Source: Lytechinus pictus (taxonomy: Eukaryota). From it: a DNA stretch of 64,000 nt. Each line of letters starts with the position of its first letter. The first letter of the stretch is position 1. Positions 6,049-33,200 of this stretch are shown here, piece by piece. The stretch covers positions 24,304,001 to 24,368,000 of the forward strand of contig NC_087247.1 in assembly GCF_037042905.1 (NCBI RefSeq). Reading direction: 5' to 3'. The notes beneath the pieces are model-generated. The model searched no databases. It had not been told where the DNA came from and saw nothing but the letters and a program-made list of their open reading frames with translations. A program made the position numbers and the translations under genes.

Positions 6049-6601
6049 TACCCTTTTTACACACGCTAAAATTTCCTTAACCCCGTACTATAGGTGGGGC
6101 TAAATGGCAATTTAGCCCCACCTATAGTACGGGGTTAAGCTTAGCCCACTTTCTTTTTACACAGCATTTTTGCAAAGTGGGCTAACCCCACCTTTAGTAC
6201 GGGATTATTTGGCCCTGCAAAAAAGCAGGGTTATCCCAGCAATTGCGGTGCTAAGAGCGATAGTACGGGGTTAAGATCGCTAGTGTAAAACGAAAGTGGG
6301 CTAAGCTTAACCCCGTACTATAGGTGGGGCTAAATGGCAATTTGGCCCCACCTATAGTACGGGGTTAAGGAAATTGTAGCGTGTGTAAAATGGTACGAGT
6401 GAAGTACTTGTACTACGAATGATCGACAAAAACCACTAGTCCGGGGTTAGCGAGTTTCGTGTGTAAAAAGCAAGCATTCCTTATCCGGGGTTAGCAATAA
6501 CAATTTGGCATGTGTAAAAAGGAAAAAAAATAGTACGGGGTTAAGGATAGTACGGGGTTAGCGATAGTCCGGGGTTAAGAAAATCCTGTGTAAAAAGGGT
6601 A
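6049..6601. mobile_element. PIF/Harbinger-like MITE with internal TAACCCCGTACTA repeats
   Basis: TIR TACCCTTTTTACACA...TGTGTAAAAAGGGTA; TSD TTA (6046-6048, 6602-6604); many internal direct and inverted copies of TAGTACGGGGTTA. Confidence 0.8.
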
Positions 6602-8267: not shown

Positions 8268-8717
8268 TATTATAGTTTGTGCAATTTTTACTATGCTTAT
8301 TTTATTATTTTTTGTTGTTGCTTTGCTCTGCTTTATTGGGTTTAGTTTAATTTTGGCCATTGATTAAGTTTTTAAATTTAGTTTAGTTTTAATTTTAGAT
8401 TAGGATTATAGAATACAGCCTACTTATGTTAGTAACGTTAGAAATCTAAACGTATTATTGTATTTCTGTGGCCCTGGTAGAGGCGAGTATATTGTTGGAC
8501 AGTTTAATAGTTACTTCAGTACAATTGGATCCAAACTTATAACTAGTTACCATCGAGCGACTTGCATTTTTCATTTTTATGAAAAGAAAAATAGATCATT
8601 CCATGATCTAAGATAAATGTCTAGTTTTCAAGTTAAAATATCAAAAAAATTCTGCTCGCACTTCGCGCTCGCGTCAATTGATTAGTTCGAAACCAATTTG
8701 TTCACGGTTACAAAAAG

Positions 8718-11700
8718 GGTGACCCGACAATTGCTCCGCCGACATCTGCTCCGCCGACAATTGCTACGCAAAATAAGACAGTTGCTCCGCCGACAATTGC
8801 TCCGGACAATTGCTCCGCCGACAGTTGCTCCGTCGACACTTGCTCCGCCGATATGTGCTCCGTCGACACTTGCTCCGCCGATATTTGCTCCGCCGATATT
8901 TGCTCTGCCGACATGTGCTCCGCCGACATCTGCTCCGCCGAAAATTGCTCCGCCGACAATTGCTCCGCCGATAATTGCTCCGCCGACATCTGCTCCGATT
9001 ATACGACAATTGCTCCGCGACAATTGCTCCGCCGATATTTGCTCCGCCGACATCTGCTCCGATTATACGACAATTGCATGAACATCTTATTTCTCCAAGT
9101 TGGTCTATGTTAAATGATAAGAAATTCATCCTGATACAAATTGTTTTGTCGTTGTCTTGTTTTTGTTATTCGTTAATGTTTTATTTATTTTATTCTCCCC
9201 CTATCATCACAGCTTTCTGCTTAAAAAACAAAACAAATTGTTCTCCCTGCCGCTGCCACTTGACAAATTGTAACGGAGAAGGGGAATGACACACTCCCCA
9301 TTGAAATTGTGAATCAGGATTTTTGTTCATATATTATTATCATTGGTTTCACTCCGGTCTTGAGCGGGGAGAGAATTTGGGGGGGGGGGGTGCTGGACAC
9401 AATATCTCTTCTGCTTTCCAGCAACTTATACACCATACATTCGCGCGGGCTCTCTCTCTCTCTCTTTCTCGTTTTGTTCTTTCACGTTGTTTATTTTTAT
9501 TGGTGACCGCTTGATTTATTGTATATTTATCAGTATTATAATTATTAATATTTGTATCAATAATTTTTATTTACGTCTTCGGCCTTATCTACCCTTGCAC
9601 TTTTTTTTCCTTCAATTTGTTTCAAACGAAAGTATGATCATCACTGGCGTACAGATGGGGGAGGGGCGTGCTAGGGGTCACGGATCCCCCCATTCTCCCT
9701 ACCAATGAAAAAAAAAAGAATAAAGGAAAGGAAAATAAATGTCATTCTTGTCTCGCCCCCTCCATTTTTTGTTGTTGGCTCATTACGCTACTGGTGAGTT
9801 ACTATAAAACTAGACTTCGGTTGTATTTTTGTTCTATTCTGTGCAATAGCGACAATATAAATATATTATAATAAATGAATATATGTATGTATCTCTCTCA
9901 TTACGTCTAAACAAATAATGTTATTTTTAAAAGACAATAATATATATACCAGCAATAATATAGTTACAAATTCATGAAACCCAATACGCATCTCACTGAA
10001 TTTATAATGCGAGCACAAAGCACGAGCTGTTATTGACATGGAAAGGGGACATTTATACGCCTATTTAAAATTGTAAACATGAAGCATATCTCGGGGGGGG
10101 GGGGATATCTCGTAAAAGAAATGAGAGCACGATGCGATAATTTAATATTTTGGATATATTTACCAGAGTTACAATTCTATATATTTCTTTTTCTTTGTGT
10201 TATTTCTTTCGACAAACTGTAATTGAAGTATTGAAGAGTATATAGGATGTTATGCCTGCTGATCATGATAGAATGTGGATTATTTTGCTGATTCATTAGA
10301 TCTTAACATGTGTTCTTTAAATTTGGTAATTTGGGTACATGTTAGAAACACAGGCATTGTGCATTCAGATGCACATTGTGGAAATGAGATTCAGTATTCC
10401 TTGCAGCTAAGAAAGGTTTTAAAAATGACACTACTCTCAATTACATGTATACTATGTCCATAGTTGCGACTTGCGAGTGTGTGAAAATGAAGGTGTTTGC
10501 AGTCATTAAAGTGTAGTTTTGGTTGGAAAACGTTAATAAAACTGTCGAGAACGTACAGTCTTCATGATTTCATTTATCTCATGTTATGATCAGTAAATCA
10601 AATAAAAAATTATAATGACAAGAACTTGTTAAGTTTATCCTTCTATTTCAATCCCATGAATAAACAGAAATCGCGATATTCAGAAATAATAAGTCATACA
10701 CCTCCTATTTTCCTCAAGCTCTCACTCACTCCCCCTCTTTCTCTCTCTCTCTCTCTCTCTTTCCCTCCATAACCCTTTTCACAATCATTTTTGTTTGATT
10801 TCCGCATAATCAAAACGATCGACGACGACAATGATAATGATGGTGATGATGAAGATGCTGATAATGATGCTGATGATGATAATGGTGGTACAATGATAAT
10901 GATAATAAGTACATGAACACACGTTTTCTTCTCATATAGTTCATTCTTGGAAAATACATAGGCGGCCATATACACATGAAGGTATATCATTTATAGAAGA
11001 AAATCTTGTTTGATTGATTTTTTTATTTTTTGAAACTACGTGTAAAATTATATCCCCCATCAACAACAAATTGTTACTTACATTATAACATCATAATGAA
11101 TATAATTCGACTATTGGCGGACCATATTTAGATTTAGATTAAGATTTATTCATTTTCCGTTCACAAAGCACAACAAAATCAAAGTAACAATACATAGTCA
11201 AATTTAAAGTACAATATCAATCGGTATAATGCATAAGAATTAGAACGTATAAACAATGAGAACTAATGCGAACTAAAGTAACCTTGACTAATAACTATAT
11301 AAAACAGAACATATGGATTTTATTTTTGGATTATTAAAAAAAAAAAATTATCCTTTTGCTATCAGTGAAGAAAACAATCATGATCAACATAAAACAAAAA
11401 AGCAACTCACTATTATTTACAGTATTATCATAATCTAAAAACCTACGGTGTGTATGACATGATGTGGATGTTGAGACCATGCAGACTGAGAGCACTGTGT
11501 GTACGATAGGATATGGAAACCAGAGTGGAGGGGTGTGCCGAGAAGGTGACACGACATGTAGCCTTTCACAAGTTGGTATTTTCTTGAATATAAATTTTTA
11601 CTTACTGAATGTCTTGGTCATGTTTGTATGGCACAAAATTTGCCGACAGTAAACATTTTGCGTGACTACAGTACAGGTTTTCGACAAAATAAGGTGGGGT

Positions 11701-12537
11701 ATACCGTTGAATTTCACCTGGAGCAAATGTCTCCACTTCGGAGCATATTTCGCCAGTCTGAGCGATTTTGACGCTAAGAATGGGGTATGTCTAATTTGTT
11801 TCTACTGTTATAACATGGAGCTATATGGTTATAATAATTACATGAAAACGCGTTTTTTTTTTTTTTATCGCCAGGCACGTAATAAAACTTACACAAATGC
11901 TCCCCCCCCCCCCCCATCATGAATAAGCATTAAGAATATCTATCCCTCCTTTGTGCTTACCCCTTTTTTTCTATTTCTTTCTATATGCATGTATCAGGGG
12001 CCGCGGAGCCGGGGGGCTTTAGCCCCCCAATTTTCCAAAGCCGTGTACAAAAAACGTAAGAATGACCATATGATTGTGATTTTTAGCATGGACAGCCCTC
12101 ACTTTGAAAACCGTTCCGCGGCCCCTGTGTATGACATTTAATATATCATGCAAGCATAGTTTAAGTTTACTTTGTAAATTCATGGAGCTATATGCTCCAT
12201 GGTAAATTGACGCCTTCAGCCTGTGCTAAAATTGTTATGCGTATGAAAGTACGAATAAAAAAATAAATAAATAATTGTCGCATTATCGGAGCAATTTACG
12301 GCGGAGCAGATGTCGGCGGAGCAATTATCGGCGGAGCAATTGTCGTATAATCGGAGCAGATGTCGGCGGAGCAAATATCGGCGGAGCAATTGTCGGCGGA
12401 GCAATTTTCGGCGGAGCAGATGTCGGCGGAGCAAATATCGGCGGAGCAAATATCGGCGGAGCAAGTGTCGACGGAGCACATATCGGCGGAGCAAGTGTCG
12501 ACGGAGCAACTGTCGGCGGAGCAACTGTCATGGAACC
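8718..12537. mobile_element. TU-type foldback transposon with 15-bp tandem-repeat inverted arms
   Basis: Left arm 8718-9076 is (GACAATTGCTCCGCC)n; right arm 12273-12537 is its reverse complement; termini GGT...ACC; perfect 8-bp TSD ACAAAAAG at 8710-8717 and 12538-12545; no transposase ORF inside. Confidence 0.88.
11995..12127. mobile_element. Short hAT-like MITE nested in the foldback element
   Basis: TIR CAGGGGCCGCGGA...TCCGCGGCCCCTG; TSD not clean. Confidence 0.5.
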
Positions 12538-12545
12538 ACAAAAAG

Positions 12546-23889: not shown

Positions 23890-26045
23890 TCTACCATCAA
23901 TAATGGACCAAAGTTTTCAAAGATAACTAAGCTTATGCATAATGATTCTATTATTGAAGATAAAGTTCAGATGGCAAATATTTTCAACAATTACTTTTCA
24001 CAAGTTGTGATTTAAGCTCTCTAGAAGTATACCAACAAACTCCCATTCATTTCATCAATATCTGGGGGATAGAAATCAAAGTTCTATGTTTTTCTCTCCT
24101 ACGAACGCACAGGAGATAATTAAAATTATATCTAGCCTAAAATCAAATAAAAGTGCAGGATTTGATAACATTGATAACAACCTTTTACTAAAAACTATGA
24201 ATTATATAATTGACCCTCTTATTTATATATTCAATTTGTCATTATCATCGGGAAATATTCCAAAATCAATGAAAATTTCTAAGATAATACCAGTCTTCAA
24301 AAAAGGTGATAGTTCTTTAGCAAGTAATTACAGACCGATTTCATTGCTTACAAACTTATCTAAAATTCTTGAAAAATTGGTTCACATACGAACCATATGT
24401 TTTTTTAAAAAGCACAACATCCTATCCGATACTCAATTTGGTTTCCGGGAAAAGAGTAGCACTTCCCACGCAATACTTTCTTTGGTTCAAACAGTTGCCA
24501 AAGCTTATGACAAGTCTTCGAATACGATTGGTTTGTTTTTAGATTTTTCAAAAGCATTCGATACAGTTGATCATAACATTCTCCTTTATAAACTTTCTCA
24601 TTATGGAATAAGAGGGGAACCACTAAAGTGGTTCAAGAATTATCTAACCGGGCGTTCACAGTTCGTTTCACTTGATTGTAATATTTCTGAACGTAAACCT
24701 GTCCTTTGTGGAGTTCCACAGGGCAGCATTCTTGGCCCACTTTTGTTCATTACTTATATAAATGATATTGATATGTCATCTAGATTGCTCCAATTTATAC
24801 TTTTCGCTGATGACTCTAATATATTTCTGTCGCACCCCGACCCAGAGCAATTGACGCAAATATTCAATGACGAACTAAAAAATGTGTCTAATTGGATAAC
24901 AGCTAACAAACTCTCTCTTAACCTAGAAAAAACTAGCTACATGCTATTTAGCAACAAGATTACGAGTGTACCAAAAGATGTAATTTTAAATGATATTGTC
25001 ATTCAAAGAGTGCGATCTACTAAATTTTTGGGACTGATCATTGACGACAAACTTTCTTGGAAAGCACATATTGATAATATTTGTAAAATCATTGCACGCA
25101 ACATCGGTGTCATTAGAAAATTAAGTTACTTCTTACCCCATTATATTTTGTTATCATTGTATTCAACGTTAATTTTACCTTACTTGAATTACGGAGTTGT
25201 TGCGTGGGGTAATGCAGCGAATTATCAAATTAATAGACTTTTTATTTAACAAAAAAGAGTGATTCGTATTATTAGTCATGCAGAATTCAGGGCACATACA
25301 AATATTCTGTTTTTGAGAAATAAAGTCTTGAAGATTAAAGATTTATATTCTTTTCAACTCGGACAGTTAATGTTCAAGTTTATCAATAAACAATTACCGT
25401 TACCTTTTAATAATATGTTTATAAAAAATGATACAATTCATAAACACTTCACTCGCCAGGCGAGTTCCTTTCATTTACCTCTGAATAGAACATCGTTTGC
25501 ACAGAAGACATTTGTTTTTACTGGTCCAAAATTATGGAATTCTTTTTCAAAGGATATTATACAATGTAATTCAATACACAATTTCAAAGGAAAACTTAAA
25601 AAATATCTTCTGAATTCATATTAGATTATCGTTTTTTCCCAAAGTAATGTAATTCAGAACTTAATATGTAAATGTGTTTATTAATTTCTCTTTGTATATA
25701 TGTTTAATCGTTTTATGATCTCTGTATACAGTGTATACTGAATCATTTATTTTTATTATTATTTAATTTTATTTTTATTTTTTTTATTCATTATATATAT
25801 ATATATTGTTTATTTCTTTATTTTATCTTATTTTTAATTCATAAAATTTACTTATAAAAGGGGGCCTTCACCCTACAAGCTCTGCTTTTTAGTTGGTCTC
25901 CTTCCCTTTCGATTTCATGGTATTATTGTATTATAAAAAAATGATTTAAATGTTATATTTTGTAAATATGTATATTGAACTATCATTGTAAATGTAAAAA
26001 GATTGAAAGAGAAAATAAATGAATTGAATTGAAAATTGAATTGAA
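23890..26045 (+). mobile_element. 5'-truncated, inactivated CR1/L2-group LINE (ORF2 reverse transcriptase)
   Basis: RT motifs KSAGFDNI, NYRPISLL, QFGFR, FLDFSKAFDTVDH, GVPQGSILGPLLF, LFADD and KFLG in 24086-25249. In-frame TAA at 25247-25249, then continuation to 25624. Frameshifted upstream MANIFNNYFSQV; 3' tail AATAAAT(GAATT)n at about 26014-26045. Confidence 0.92.
24086..25624 (+). pseudogene. LINE reverse transcriptase ORF2 remnant with one premature stop
   Basis: ORFs 24086-25249 and 25259-25624 are in the same frame, separated by a single TAA (RLFI*QKRVIR, expected LFILQKR). Confidence 0.9.
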
Positions 26046-26502
26046 GTCGGCATCTTTCATAATATCAGTGCATGCAGACATAACGACTCAAAAGTCACAT
26101 ATTACATTTTTTTAACTTTCATATTTTGATCCTGCTACACGAAGGCGCAATGTCCTGCAATTAATGCGTCTGCAGACACAGACCCTCATCGAAACTTTTA
26201 TAAACATGTTAGTCTTGGTTTTGAGCAGGGGCCGCGGAAAAAACCCCACAGTTTGATTTTTTTTTATTACCACGTTTATGAAAGTTTGGTGGGGTACGTT
26301 CCGCGTCCCCCTGTAGAAAGAGACCGAGCACAAATCCCTGTCAGTGATCACTTCCACTGAAGTAGAAAAATACCCCGGTGCGTTTTTCTAGGTATTATTT
26401 AGATTTTTTTTCTTTTTGTTTTGAAGTTGTTTTTATTGAATTCTTTCAACACAAGACCCCATGTTTAACCATAGCTCTATGGTTTAACCATAGAGCTATT
26501 AA

Positions 26503-27086
26503 AGGAGAATGAAACTCTTGGAGCAAGTTAGCTTTTGTGAAAGCAGAAAAATCAAAGAATAAGATCAACAAAAGTTTGAGTAAAATAGGACTAGCAATAG
26601 AAGAGTTATGAGCATTTGAATGTCGAGATCACTAATGCTATGGAGATCCTCCAATTGGCAATGCGACCAAGATCTATGATGTCACAGATGAACAACTCTC
26701 CCCTTTGGGACACTGAAAATATACCCCAAAACATTTCTTTTTGCTCATTCTAATCATATGACAAACGATTCATCAATGATATAATGTTGTGAAACCTCTG
26801 TACTTGTCCTCTCATAAAGAGAACACCTCACCTTGTGATAGACTCTATAAAAGTGAGAATATAAGTGATATAAGTACTAAAGTAATGAGGGAGTTGTACG
26901 TGTGTGACATCACAGATCTTGGTCGCATTGCCAATGGTAGGAACTACATGGCATTAGTGATCTCAATATTAAAATACTCATAACTTTCTTATTATTCATT
27001 CAATCTTCCTCAAACTTTCAACAATATGTTTCTTTGATTTTTCTCTTTGATATGGATTCAGCTGGTCTCAAGGGTTTCATTCTCCT
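26503..27086 (+). mobile_element. Kolobok-like MITE, copy 1 (immediately upstream of COPG)
   Basis: TTAA TSD (26499-26502, 27087-27090); TIR AGGAGAATGAAAC...GTTTCATTCTCCT; long imperfect subterminal inverted repeats. Confidence 0.85.
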
Positions 27087-27272
27087 TTAATAGCTCCATG
27101 GTTTAACATAGGCCGGCCAGGCATGCAGCGCAGAGCAGTACGTATGTGTCTGTGTTCTGCGCAGAAAGCTGCGCAGTGACAATTAATGTGACGTGGAATC
27201 TCGACGTGCCTAGAAATTTCACTGCTGGAACAGAGAATATTTGTACAATATTTTGATAATTCCCAGTCTAAC

Positions 27273-30200
27273 ATGATGCTCCGACGTGATAAGAAAGATG
27301 AGGAAGATGGTGAGATTTATATTTACATCTTAAAGTCAATTCCGATTTTCTGTAACTATTTTGTAAATTATTTATAGTTTACGTGTGAAGGGTGAGGGAA
27401 TCGACTTTGATAATGTTAATCCCCATCTACTGTAAATGGTGTGAGTTGTTTGTTCATGCTCTCACTCTCTGACTCTTTCGGAGGCAGAGCTCTGCAGCTC
27501 TGTGTGTCATGAAGCGCTAATCTTAATGTAAACAGCCCAAATGCTCACTTATGCCCATGTGAGCAAACCAATTTTTTACTAGATAATTCTGTAGAGTATC
27601 CTGCCCAAGGCCAAGTCCAAGATTGGACATGTTCACCCTGACGAAAACTTTGTTAAAAATAGCAGAAAAATAATTTAAAATATTATATTGCATTGGTGAA
27701 CATTTGAAGGTTTGACTTTGAGGAAAATCCAACAGGTTAAGAAATTTAATAGAATGTCAATTTTTTTTATATTTATGACATCATAAACGTTGGACTTTTA
27801 TATGACAAGTTAGCATTTTCAGATGATATCATATCACACTTAACTTAGACTTAGAGGAATTCAAAACCTGGAACAACTGTCAGTTTTCCACAAAAAAATA
27901 AAAATGAATATCAGGGATTTTCAATTCCCATTGATGAATGGGAAACCATGAACTGTTAATCAGATACAATAGGCTTTTCATATTTTCCTAATTTGATTTC
28001 TCAGTAAAATTTTGTTCAGGTTTGTAAAAGAAAAAGAACTTAAGAGAGACAAAGACCAGAATTTACTCTGTAGATACATGATATATTACATGATACCAAA
28101 AATTCAATTAAAACAATTAGATATATATACTCTCAGACTTGCCACTCATTCAATGAACAAGGTTATGACATAACTTGAGAGACTTGCAATGAAACAGACA
28201 AAAAGTTGACCCTTTTGGTTTCATCATTTAGCAATAAATGGCAGACTAATCCCACTGTATTGTGGTCTGGCTAATAATATTCCACCATTGTTATCTTACC
28301 TCTGTCTCAGACCCTACATTTAATAGCAATATTTGATTTTAACTTAATCTTAATTATGTATGAATGCATGCATTTTCTATAATTGTCTAATTATCTAATA
28401 TCAATTATCCCTTTTTTTTTGCTTTCCAAACAGGAAGCAATCCATTCCAAAATCTGGACAGAAGCGCAGTCCTCCAAGAGGTAATTTTCAAATCAGTTAG
28501 AAAGCACTAGAATACTTTAAAATAATTTAAACAAGTGTTCACCCTATTCACTATTAGCTTGTATTAGTGGTGACTAGTGACTAGTGGTGACCTCCTCGGG
28601 TGGTTCCTGATATGGGACGTTGAGGAGTATAGTCAAGAAGAAGAAGACCTCAAATATTCACAGGTATTTTAAAACATTGAGAGGTCAATTTGTGTGCACT
28701 TAAAGGGGGAGTGAACTGTGTGTGGTCTCTCATTGACTCTGCGTTATAGATAGTCTTCAAATATACGTCTTCAAATATACGTTTTAAGATATCTACTAAT
28801 ACTACAGAGAATAAATTGACCTATAATTGTATTTGTATAGAAAAACTCAAATATTTTGAGAGGAAAAGTAATTGTTATGCTACTTGGTAACATACTCATT
28901 GTGGTATAAATGTATTGAGTACTGGTAATTAATTAGCATGTTATCATTCAAGTGGGTCTATATTACTAGACTACACTAGCATTATGGGTCAGGAAACTGG
29001 CCAGGTATGAGTAGTTGAGGACTCGAGATGGCGCTATTGGTTCATATCTGCTTTAAAAATGGCTCTCCCAATGTTAAAGGAGAATGAAACCCTTGAAACT
29101 AGCTGAATCCATATTAAAGAGAAAAATCAAAGAAACATATTGTTGAAAGTTTGAGGAAGATTGAATGAATAATAAGAAAGTTATGAGCATTTGAATATTG
29201 AGATCACTAGTGCCATGTAGATCCTCCCATCGGCAATGCGACCAAGATCTGTGATATCACACACGTACAACTCCCTCATTACTTTAGTACTTATTTCACT
29301 TATATTCTCACTTTTATAGAGTCTATCACAAGGTTAGGTGTTTTCTTTATGAGATGACAAGTACAGAGGTTTCACAACATTATATCATTGATGAATCGTT
29401 TGTCATATGATTAGAATGAGCAAAAAGAGATGTTTTGGGGTATATTTTCAGTGTCCGAATGGGAGAGTTGTACGTGTGTGACATCACAGATCTTGGTCGC
29501 ATTGCCAATGGGAGGATCTCCATAGCATTAGTGATCTCGACATTCAAATGCTCATAACTCTTTTATTGCTAGTCCTATTTTACTCAAAGTTTTGTTGATC
29601 TTATTCTTTGATTTTTCTGCTTTCACAAAAGCTAACTTGCTCCAAGAGTTTCATTCTCCTTTAAATAGATGTCATTTTAAGTTATGTAAGGACACTTTTC
29701 TATATATCATTTTTATAGCACTAATGGGAAAATAAAAAAAGTGCACAGGAAATATCCAAGGCCAAAAGAGAGGGGCAGTGAGGCAAATTAACAGGGCATT
29801 CAATGCCATGGCCTTTGATTGATAGCATTGAGTAATCACTGCTTTTTACAACATGTAAATTCATAACTTATTGTTTATCCAAGTTTGTTCAATCTTTCAC
29901 CTACATTTATATGCATAATTTCATTTTTGCCATAATTATCAACTTTTATGTTGTAGGCAACAACAGGAAGACAAGACATATGCTTCTCTGATCCATCTTT
30001 TTTTTTTTTAATCAAAGCTCTTTCACCTTGTCTGTATTCCCCTTTAATGAACCACAATGCTTGTTGCTATTTCACACAATCCTCACACTTTTTGTGTCAG
30101 TGAAATATTACACTTTTGTCAGCAATTTTGTCAGCAATGACCTTTATCTGCACATACACCGATTGTATCTGCATTTATTGTAATAGCTTTAAAAATGAAA

Positions 30201-33200
30201 ATGAAATGATAAGTTAGGCAAAAAGAAAATTCGTTTCAGTATTTGATTTTCATGAGCTGATTATTCATGCTATGTATTTTTTGTGATTTGTTATAGGCCC
30301 GTGTGTTCAATGCTACACCTATAAATCCAAGGAGATGCTGCCATATTTTGACAAAGGTCATGTACATCATCAACCAGGTAAGACTTTTTATTGGTGTTCC
30401 ATAGTGAGTTGGATGAATGAATTCACCCTCATAGATCAGAAGCAACAATGATGGCAGCTTCCAATTTAACGTATAAGTCTTTAAATTTTTTATTGCAATT
30501 TTGAATAAATATGGTCCTATTCTTTCAATTTCAGACATTAGTGATATCCACTATCACTGATAGGGCCTAATCACTGATGATGTGTTAGAAATTGCTTGTC
30601 ACAAAAGTTATGGTAAAATATCATTTCAGGTCAGTGAACTTAGACTATGTTATGGCATCTACATGGAATAAAAAAAACAAACTAATATAGATCTTGCATT
30701 TCAAAATAAGTTTTGAAGTATAAAAGTTTGTCATACTAAAGATAACTTTTCATAAATCGTTATCAAATATCTCCATTCATTTGAGTAAAATTTGGCGTCA
30801 CAGTGTCAAGGTCAGAGATAATTTTAGGTAAATTAATTTCGAAAAAAAGAGATTTTACTATGAAGAAAAAAATATCTGATCAACATTGTAGGGCTATAAA
30901 GTTGTATTATGTACTAATGTCACCTACCATTAAACAATTTTGTGTTGACTTTTATAGGGAGAAGCCATTGGGACTACAGAGGCTACAGAGACTTTCTTTG
31001 CCATGACGAAGCTCTTCCAATCAAACGATGTAAGTATGAAATCTAGTTCTGTAAACTTGAAATTATTTTGTTTGTACCTATTTCCCTTGTGAGAAAAACT
31101 GAATGACAGAATTGAGATATTGGAGTTGTTTTTTCTCATAATGCAGATTTAAATTACTTTGATTTTGAAACATTGATGCTTGATTCTGATGGATATTTAC
31201 CATTTTCATTTCCCTATTGTGAGGGAGTATAGTATTCTAGTATTAAGTTCCCAATTTGCAAATTGTCATTGAATCTTTACCACAGTATAGTCAGATAGCA
31301 ATGGAGATTTTTGATAGGTGATCAACATGCTGCTATTTCCATCGTTTTTTTTGGTAATATATAGTGCAAATAAATGCAAATATACTGCATGTATATGTGT
31401 CAACAGTAAAAAACACCCCAACTGTTGTAGGGGTTAATCCACAATTATTGAGTGATATTTACACACTGTGGGAAGTGTGTGTGGTTAGCGAGTGAATCTT
31501 CACACTCCCAGGTCCTCGTTTTGATGGAATAAATTCAACTTTAATAGTTACATGTAAGTTACTTTAGATTACTTTAGGGCTTCTCTAAAGTTGCTATTAG
31601 ATGTAATGCAAAATATTATTTGTTTTGAACAGAAGTAAAAATATGCCTCGTCTACAAAATATTATCTTACCTCCGTGGCGGTCAGATTGGATGGTTCTAC
31701 TTCTAATCTCAACCAATGTTTTATTTCTGTAGGTCATGCTCCGTCGTATGGTATACCTGATGATTAAAGAGATGGCTAACCTTGCAGAGGATGTGATCAT
31801 AGTGACTAGTAGTTTGACCAAGGATATGACAGGCAAGGAAGATCTTTATAGGGCTGCTGCCATACGTTCCCTCTGCAAGATTACCGATGTGAGTTATTTC
31901 AAACATTTGATGTCATATCTCTTTTAGTCTGGTACTATTAAAGATATTGCCGCAATCGATTATTTACTTTCCAGTCATTTTGAAATGTTATCTACAAGTC
32001 ATTATCTGTAATGTGACTTCCTTCTACGACCAAAGCAAGCCCCTTGTGATACTTATTCATTTATTTGCTTTAATAATGGAAATGGTTTCAGATTGTTCTA
32101 TTGCTGATGTATTTTAAACATTCCAATATCAGACAGTATAAAAAAACATATTAAGAAACTATTGAATTACCTCAATCAATCAATATGATGATTGAAGAGA
32201 GCTCTTTGATAATAGTTTTACACCCAAAAGAAGGTAATATCCTTGAAGAAAAAATGTAATGCCAAATTCTAAATGCACTTGCTCGAAAGAAGACTTTATT
32301 TTGATCAGTTTATAGATCTATTTTTATTCTTGACACCACAATGACAGTGTGTAAACATTTGTATATTAAAAATATATCTTGAGAATGACAATTCTGTTAT
32401 AAAGAATGAAATTAATGTGTACCTTTATCTTATGGCTTTGTTCTTCATCTCTTATCTCATACTATTTCCTCTTAAACTTGTGTGTGATACCAGAGCTCAA
32501 TGTTGCAAGGAATAGAGCGTTACATGAAGCAGGCTATTGTGGATAAGGTTTCTAGTGTATCTTCTGCAGCTCTCTGCTCATCTCTGGTAAGTTCTCTCAT
32601 AAAATCTTTCAGAGTTTAAAATGTTCTGCGAGTGTCAACAAAGAATATATTATAGATTTTAATTCCACAGAAAGCAAAGAAAGAAAAAAACCATCTAAGT
32701 AACTTAAATACATAACTGGGGGGGGGGGGGAGGTTCTCATAACATTCGACAAGAATCTGTTAAATGACAGAGTGCTGTGATGCTGTCCATCCAAATGAAC
32801 ATCAACAGGGTGGTGGTGATTACTGGAATAATGGATTCACAAATGAAGCATGCTGAGCTCCTCTGTATTTTGTTTTGCTCTTTTACAGTAAGCTTTATAT
32901 TAAAACAATATTGTGTTCCATTTTTCATTTGTTATTTTTGGTGAACTAGCACCTTTTGAAGCAAAGCCCTGACGTGGTGAAGAGATGGGTTAATGAAGTC
33001 CAGGAAGCCGCCTCGAATGACAATATCATGGTTCAGTACCATGCCCTGGGCTTACTCTATCATATCCGCAAGCATGATCGTCTGGCTTCTTCTAAGATGG
33101 TTAGCAAGTACACCAGGGGTGGACTCAAGTCTCCCTATGCCACCTGTTTGCTGGTATGTATACATGTACTGTAGTTTGTATGATACTTTATATTAATGGA

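Follow-up and report, generated by a model that had tools for sequence, protein, structure and literature searches.

The proximal promoter of the sea-urchin COPG gene carries a stack of transposon scars, in which three copies of the heptamer GTTTAAC alternate with two short palindromic remnants, and the second remnant is split by a 584-bp MITE. The history that appears to account best for this arrangement, held with somewhat better than even confidence, is that a P-type transposon family inserted twice at GTTTAAC, that both insertions were excised, and that the MITE later entered the 24-nt scar left by one of them. Each layer of the locus corresponds to known transposon behaviour and not to a new kind of system. 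The window referred to below is the whole 64-kb stretch of DNA that was analysed, and positions are counted from its first letter.

Direct reading of 26200-27500 gives the following structure, in which the remnants and target copies are listed without a strand:

26463-26469, no strand: GTTTAAC, copy 1 of the 7-bp target duplication (direct reading).
26470-26481, no strand: remnant 1, CATAGCTCTATG, 12 nt (direct reading and script decomposition).
26482-26488, no strand: GTTTAAC, middle copy, common to both remnants (direct reading).
26489-26502, no strand: left half of remnant 2, CATAGAGCTATTAA, terminus positions 1-14, made up of CATAGAGCTA (26489-26498) and TTAA (26499-26502).
26503-27086, plus strand: MITE, 584 bp, foldback, with AGGAG...CTCCT ends.
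27087-27100, no strand: right half of remnant 2, made up of TTAA (27087-27090, the right target duplication of the MITE) and TAGCTCCATG (27091-27100).
27101-27107, no strand: GTTTAAC, copy 3 (direct reading).

The TTAA that closes the left half of remnant 2 also serves as the left target duplication of the MITE. Deletion of the 584 bp together with one TTAA restores the 24-nt CATAGAGCTATTAATAGCTCCATG, which a script finds to be palindromic save for a single pair (CATAG opposite CATGG). The original prediction had described the locus as target, remnant, target, remnant split by TTAA-MITE-TTAA, and target, and this string matches the DNA letter for letter; the palindrome that it expected on removal of the MITE does emerge, at 24 nt, but is imperfect by that single pair. 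A second palindrome, perfect and of the form 14+1+14, spans 26471-26499 and is centred on the middle GTTTAAC, which is itself palindromic around its central base and stands in the context ATG-GTTTAAC-CAT.

As a bare 7-mer, GTTTAAC is not enriched in the 64-kb window (11 observed versus 10.95 expected). A chance origin of the triplet is nonetheless rejected: the overall frequency is that of the background, but the placement against palindrome ends is not random, with three copies inside 645 bp, each directly against a CAT...ATG end, and a probability of ~1e-4 for an exact 7-mer at a fixed place. At position 26484 all 10 RNA reads carry C, so that the middle copy reads GTCTAAC; the same C is present in one same-species contig (run X1) and one related-species contig (run X10), while the other X10 contigs keep T. 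The C may be an allele or may be read from another locus.

The remnants are part of a dispersed family. At ≤1 mismatch, CATGGAGCTAT is found at only three loci in the window, namely the COPG site and the two following:

11807-11834, no strand: related remnant, GTTATAA, CATGGAGCTATATG, GTTATAA.
12174-12208, no strand: related remnant, GTAAATT, CATGGAGCTATATGCTCCATG, GTAAATT.

All four CAT(G/A)GAGC palindromes in the window lie between exact 7-bp repeats, and the repeat sequences differ between loci. Since each palindrome has a 7-bp flanking repeat of its own, the palindromes are best read as transposition products and not as a promoter motif. Footprints of one and the same family had been proposed for the COPG site, and a motif lacking target duplications elsewhere had been named as the observation that would speak against them; both other loci in the window have exact 7-bp duplications, and the family takes the form expected of excision scars. 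The inner lengths are 12, 14, 21 and 24 nt. With a common terminus of 15 nt, CATGGAGCTATTAAC, script decomposition resolves the 12-, 24- and 14-nt remnants each into a left-end and a right-end piece with 0-4 letters in common, and the 21-nt remnant requires two filler letters. The retained end pieces measure 1-14 nt in the window (n = 4 scars) and reach 15 nt in related-species contigs without the MITE. Remnant 1 is CAT plus ATAGCTCTATG, with 1-5 nt from one CATGGAGCTATTAAC end and 7-11 nt from the other. The 24-nt remnant is composed of terminus positions 1-14 joined to terminus positions 1-14 at the self-complementary TTAA; thus, a TTAA target exists in this scar.

No homology was found between the surroundings of the COPG site and those of the 11807/12174 cluster. 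The latter two scars are 367 bp apart, inside the central part of a foldback transposon (8710-12545) whose left arm consists of tandem ATTGCTCCGCCGAC-like subrepeats. Clusters of these scars are, therefore, not confined to promoters. A small inverted-repeat element with the ends CAGGGGCCGCGGA...CCGCG(G/T)CCCCTG occurs at 26225-26314 and 11996-12134, within ~150 bp of both CATGGAGC scar clusters, and 26122-26269 is multicopy in the reads; its presence near both clusters may be a coincidence.

In the proposed history, a DNA transposon with CATGGAGCTATTAAC ends and a 7-bp duplication would have entered the GTTTAAC heptamer of the proximal COPG promoter twice, the two insertions being probably opposite in orientation and set apart by exactly one target copy. 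Both copies would then have been excised, and the broken ends would have retained short single-stranded end pieces that could join at self-complementary stretches (TTAA in the 24-nt scar, AT or ATAG in the 12-nt scar), with the outcome target-scar-target-scar-target. The central TTAA of the 24-nt scar would later have been taken as a target, and duplicated, by the 584-bp Kolobok/T2-type MITE.

The orientation is suggested by the CATAG variant, two ends of which face each other across the middle GTTTAAC and which is absent from the five other ends in the window. With the 12-nt scar taken as CAT plus ATAGCTCTATG, two variant ends suffice, as would be expected of a single end sequence that came to lie there twice, once in each orientation. 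In the palindromic-target model of P insertion, the terminal CAT restores the target and hotspots are re-used (Linheiro and Bergman 2008, PMC2577343); double insertions are inverted with one duplication between them, as in singed-weak (PMC2577343). Double P insertions at one site are common, have the target duplication in the junction (McGurk and Barbash 2018, PMC5932611) and are found closer to transcription starts (median 169 bp, PMC5932611) than are single ones. The favoured course is a double insertion in inverted orientation and then two excisions, because the palindromic target, the ATG-GTTTAAC-CAT context and the facing CATAG ends fit this P model. Of the two successive insertion/excision cycles first suggested for the site, a double insertion at one heptamer would thus be the best fit, and one with published precedent. 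For a rough scale, the four scars in 64 kb correspond to a density of ~6e-5 per bp, and a second strike on the same heptamer under uniform chance to ~1e-4 per scar.

Another course, possible though rather unlikely, is that one insertion and one excision took place, that the extra GTTTAAC and the 12-nt palindrome arose secondarily, and that the MITE then entered at TTAA. The secondary unit could have come from fold-back or template switching at a palindromic single-stranded end during repair, or, at a later time, from slippage between the flanking GTTTAAC copies, or unequal exchange between them, with the subsequent loss of 12 nt. Several features of the locus would suit such copying. The units 26463-26480 and 26482-26499 are spaced 19 apart and agree at 89%, and fold-back synthesis would be expected to leave a perfect palindrome such as 26471-26499. 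The 12-nt scar can be derived from the 24-nt scar by loss of the 12 nt that separate two ATAG repeats and a single C>T change, and the rare CATAG variant at both ends would be accounted for. The course nevertheless needs two or three rare steps, and repeats of 7 bases are short for unequal exchange, whereas P elements often enter one target twice, with exactly this spacing and orientation predicted (PMC5932611, PMC2577343). The double insertion is, therefore, retained as the preferred reading.

The scar family most likely belongs to the P superfamily, an assignment made on account of the 7-bp duplications, the CAT(G/A) ends, the long two-sided remnants and the targets that start with GT. The ends read CATGG or CATAG and agree with CAT(G/A), which is a short motif and a weak marker. 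The ends of Drosophila P begin likewise with CAT. The zebrafish Pdre2 end, CATACCTGTCAAC, begins with CATACC (PMC10983969). The duplication is exactly 7 bp at all four remnants, within the 7-8 bp of the superfamily, and 7-bp duplications are known for its members 1360 and Galileo (PMC3698922). P transposase cuts 17 nt into the inverted repeat (Beall and Rio 1997, as cited in PMC10983969); the remnant pieces of ≤14 nt are consistent with P-type excision, since they are within the staggered cut expected of it (≤17 nt per end), in a small sample of four scars. All three duplicated heptamers (GTTTAAC, GTTATAA and GTAAATT) begin with GT, and the junction motif of double P insertions, GTCTAGAG, is most specific at its first two letters (PMC5932611).

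It is unlikely, by comparison, that the scars are real but stem from another superfamily that makes 7-bp duplications, such as a Mutator-like or Dada-like one. The length of a duplication is by itself not diagnostic, and the window yielded neither a transposase linked to the ends, nor an ORF for a THAP-domain (P/THAP9-type) transposase, nor a full-length parent element that ends in this way; the only large ORF near the site is that of a LINE:

24086-25249, plus strand: LINE reverse-transcriptase ORF, intact, 387 codons, 1.2 kb upstream of the site.

Against another superfamily stand the remnants of 10-15 nt from both ends, which are a known product of the P-type 17-nt staggered cut (PMC10983969), the ends, whose initial CAT is shared with P and Pdre2, and the three targets that start with GT like GTCTAGAG. 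A P-type origin thus remains the preferred assignment. For sea-urchin P-type scars, nothing specific was found in the literature. The 3' tail of the LINE, with its TGAATTGAA repeats, runs to ~26047 and is highly multicopy in all DNA runs.

The element within remnant 2 (26503-27086) has internal arms of 161 nt that are 78% complementary. The motif TTAAAGGAGAATGAAAC occurs four times in the window, as two inverted pairs, and a second copy of the MITE lies within the gene:

29074-29664, minus strand: second copy of the MITE, inverted, in COPG intron 1.

The two copies are 95.8% identical over 592 bp, and the second has TTAA at both ends in unrelated flanks (...CCAATG-TTAA and TTAA-ATAGAT...). The MITE is hugely multicopy in all four read and contig runs, and in hundreds of reads and contigs its other copies part from the window at precisely 26499 and 27090: loose ends without a consensus start exactly before 26498/26499 in 835 RNA reads and 96 X10 contigs, and behind 27090/27091 in 761 RNA reads. 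These loose ends and the unrelated flanks of the second copy place the MITE boundary at TTAA. The 39-nt inverted repeat (26482-26520 and 27069-27107) that passes through GTTTAAC is, therefore, a by-product of nesting. Both copies are surrounded by TTAA target duplications, and AGGAG is terminal at both ends of both.

The piggyBac elements also target TTAA, and their ends begin with CCC...GGG. A piggyBac identity was rejected for the MITE, which shares the target but ends in AGGAG...CTCCT. Judged on its termini, the 584-bp element fits a Kolobok/T2-type MITE, because the TTAA target and the AGGAG ends match the TTAA target and terminal AGGRR that form the signature of T2-MITE/Kolobok elements (PMC6004289). 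The landing of a TTAA-specific element in the scar, a further part of the original prediction, is borne out by the independent, TTAA-duplicating MITE at the centre of the 24-nt remnant.

A different arrangement, in which P-like ends around a captured Kolobok MITE formed a composite non-autonomous element that arrived whole and made the GTTTAAC duplication, is very unlikely. The 39-nt inverted repeat does run unbroken through target, P-like end and MITE end, and the RNA reads and the one contig with C at 26484 might derive from a second copy of such an element. However, depth, which is in the hundreds or thousands over the MITE, falls to ~5 (RNA) in the adjoining 26418-26491 bin, and the loose ends of the other copies begin at TTAA without a consensus, so the junction concerned, CATAGAGCTATTAAAGGAG, is not multicopy. 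Just 10-14 nt of P-like end would be left for recognition by a transposase, and the unit minus the MITE is exactly terminus positions 1-14 plus 1-14 at TTAA. The interval 26482-27107 was also considered as a single element, bearing inverted repeats of 39 nt and a duplication of 7 bp; this reading was rejected because the second copy and hundreds of reads stop at TTAA. A MITE nested in a pre-existing scar is, thus, preferred.

The RNA reads over the MITE (run X21, 26499-27090) differ from the window by A>G at 62, T>C at 43, G>A at 5 and C>T at 7 mismatches, and the X10 DNA contigs over the same interval are without an A>G/T>C bias. The excess resembles A-to-I editing, of the ADAR type, acting on double-stranded RNA from the foldback MITE family, with differences between copies and unmatched DNA as caveats.

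The gene downstream is COPG by Pfam, with Adaptin_N, COP-gamma_platf and Coatomer_g_Cpla on its downstream exons, and its start is laid out as follows:

27181-27209, plus strand: zone where COPG RNA coverage begins, the approximate transcription start (read depth).
27273-27309, plus strand: COPG start codon and coding part of exon 1 (12 codons, then a gt donor).

The depth of stranded same-species RNA is 0 at 27180, 2 at 27209, 10 at 27228 and 14 at 27299. The first ATG (27273) is 166 bp from 27107, in line with the ~165 bp given beforehand. The last GTTTAAC ends ~74-102 bp before the RNA start; thus, the stacked scar site is in the proximal promoter of COPG. P insertions are known to pile up <200 bp upstream of transcription starts (PMC7337890); of the two scar clusters, the COPG site falls within that distance and the other lies inside the foldback transposon. 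No match to a known RNA family was found in 26000-27400. A role of the palindromes as conserved regulatory sites, in place of an origin as transposon remains, is scarcely credible: their position, from ~75-100 bp (27107) to ~700 bp (26463, copy 1) before the RNA start, and the alignment of related-species contigs to 26418-26502 would agree with such sites, but the same core recurs at unrelated places in differing exact 7-bp duplications, once inside a foldback transposon, and the inner lengths vary (12, 14, 21 and 24 nt).

Alleles in which the site was empty, or held the scars alone, had been expected, and none was seen in the same-species runs, where no joint lacking a scar or the MITE was found under thin coverage by X1 contigs and X21 RNA reads. 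Contigs without the MITE do occur in the related-species run X10, in which three joints lead from 26499-26502 to 27087 with the extra letters G, CTATTAGCTG or ATATATTAACAG. These joints extend the common terminus to position 15, and their depth is 24-62 compared to ~43 for single-copy DNA; one of them has a shorter side of only 20 letters. One such contig reads CATAGAGCTATTAA-CTATTAGCTG-TTAATAGCTCCATG, and one X10 contig has TTAA, 10 nt and TTAA at the junction. The MITE-less joints may stem from the orthologous locus or from different members of the scar family, and the form with two TTAA copies, if orthologous, might reflect imprecise excision of the MITE in that lineage.

Other small palindromes are present in the window. 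Two in COPG intron 1, at 28567-28591 and 30553-30577, are enclosed by exact 8-bp duplications (GTGGTGAC, TAGTGACTA, GTGGTGAC and ATCACTGA, TAGGGCCTA, ATCACTGA) and have the appearance of scars left on excision by a hAT-like family with TAG...CTA ends. A 28-nt palindrome, GTGGGGCTAAATGGCAATTT(A/G)GCCCCAC, occurs twice with one letter different, at 6088-6127 and 6318-6357; the two are 230 bp apart, each flanked by CTATAG, and are probably parts of one repeated unit and not independent scars.

If the double insertion and later nesting took place as proposed, the core promoter of COPG, an essential housekeeping gene, would hold a compact record of at least three transposon events, and a functional COPG promoter would tolerate ~640 bp of foreign DNA from ~75-100 bp upstream of the start. 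The fly model of P-type elements that return to palindromic targets in inverted pairs would also come to cover an echinoderm, and scars fixed in the germline. The scar family could mark ancient insertion preferences genome-wide. In a bolder extension, offered as a speculation that is more probably wrong than right by a wide measure, the sea-urchin genome would hold a dense P-type fossil record of tens of thousands of fixed scars, palindromic GTNNNAC heptamers near transcription starts would have been struck repeatedly, and the central TTAA of the commonest scar, itself set in a palindrome, would be a preferred landing pad for Kolobok MITEs, one transposon family thus preparing targets for another.

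The MITE resembles the T2-MITE/Kolobok elements of Xenopus (PMC6004289) in its TTAA duplication, terminal AGGRR, noncoding nature and very high copy number; by contrast, it represents a sea-urchin family and has long internal foldback arms. The scars are similar to the excision footprints of P elements (Beall and Rio 1997, as cited in PMC10983969), in which both targets are kept and ≤~15 nt of each inverted repeat are joined at microhomology. In comparison to those footprints, the sea-urchin scars are known from sequence alone, are fixed in the germline and are apparently numerous. The arrangement proposed for COPG is also like that of Drosophila singed-weak and its palindromic-target model (PMC2577343), with two insertions in one palindromic target, one duplication between them, a predicted inverted orientation and a terminal CAT that restores the palindromic target (here ATG-GTTTAAC-CAT). 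It differs from singed-weak in that scars only are present, the duplication is 7 and not 8 bp, a sea urchin takes the place of the fly as host, and the P transposase is presumed. The P-element dimers of fly populations (PMC5932611) similarly have the target duplication between the units, a location near a transcription start and a target that begins with GT. However, these dimers are intact, very young and mostly head-to-tail, whereas the COPG locus consists of old scars that were probably head-to-head.
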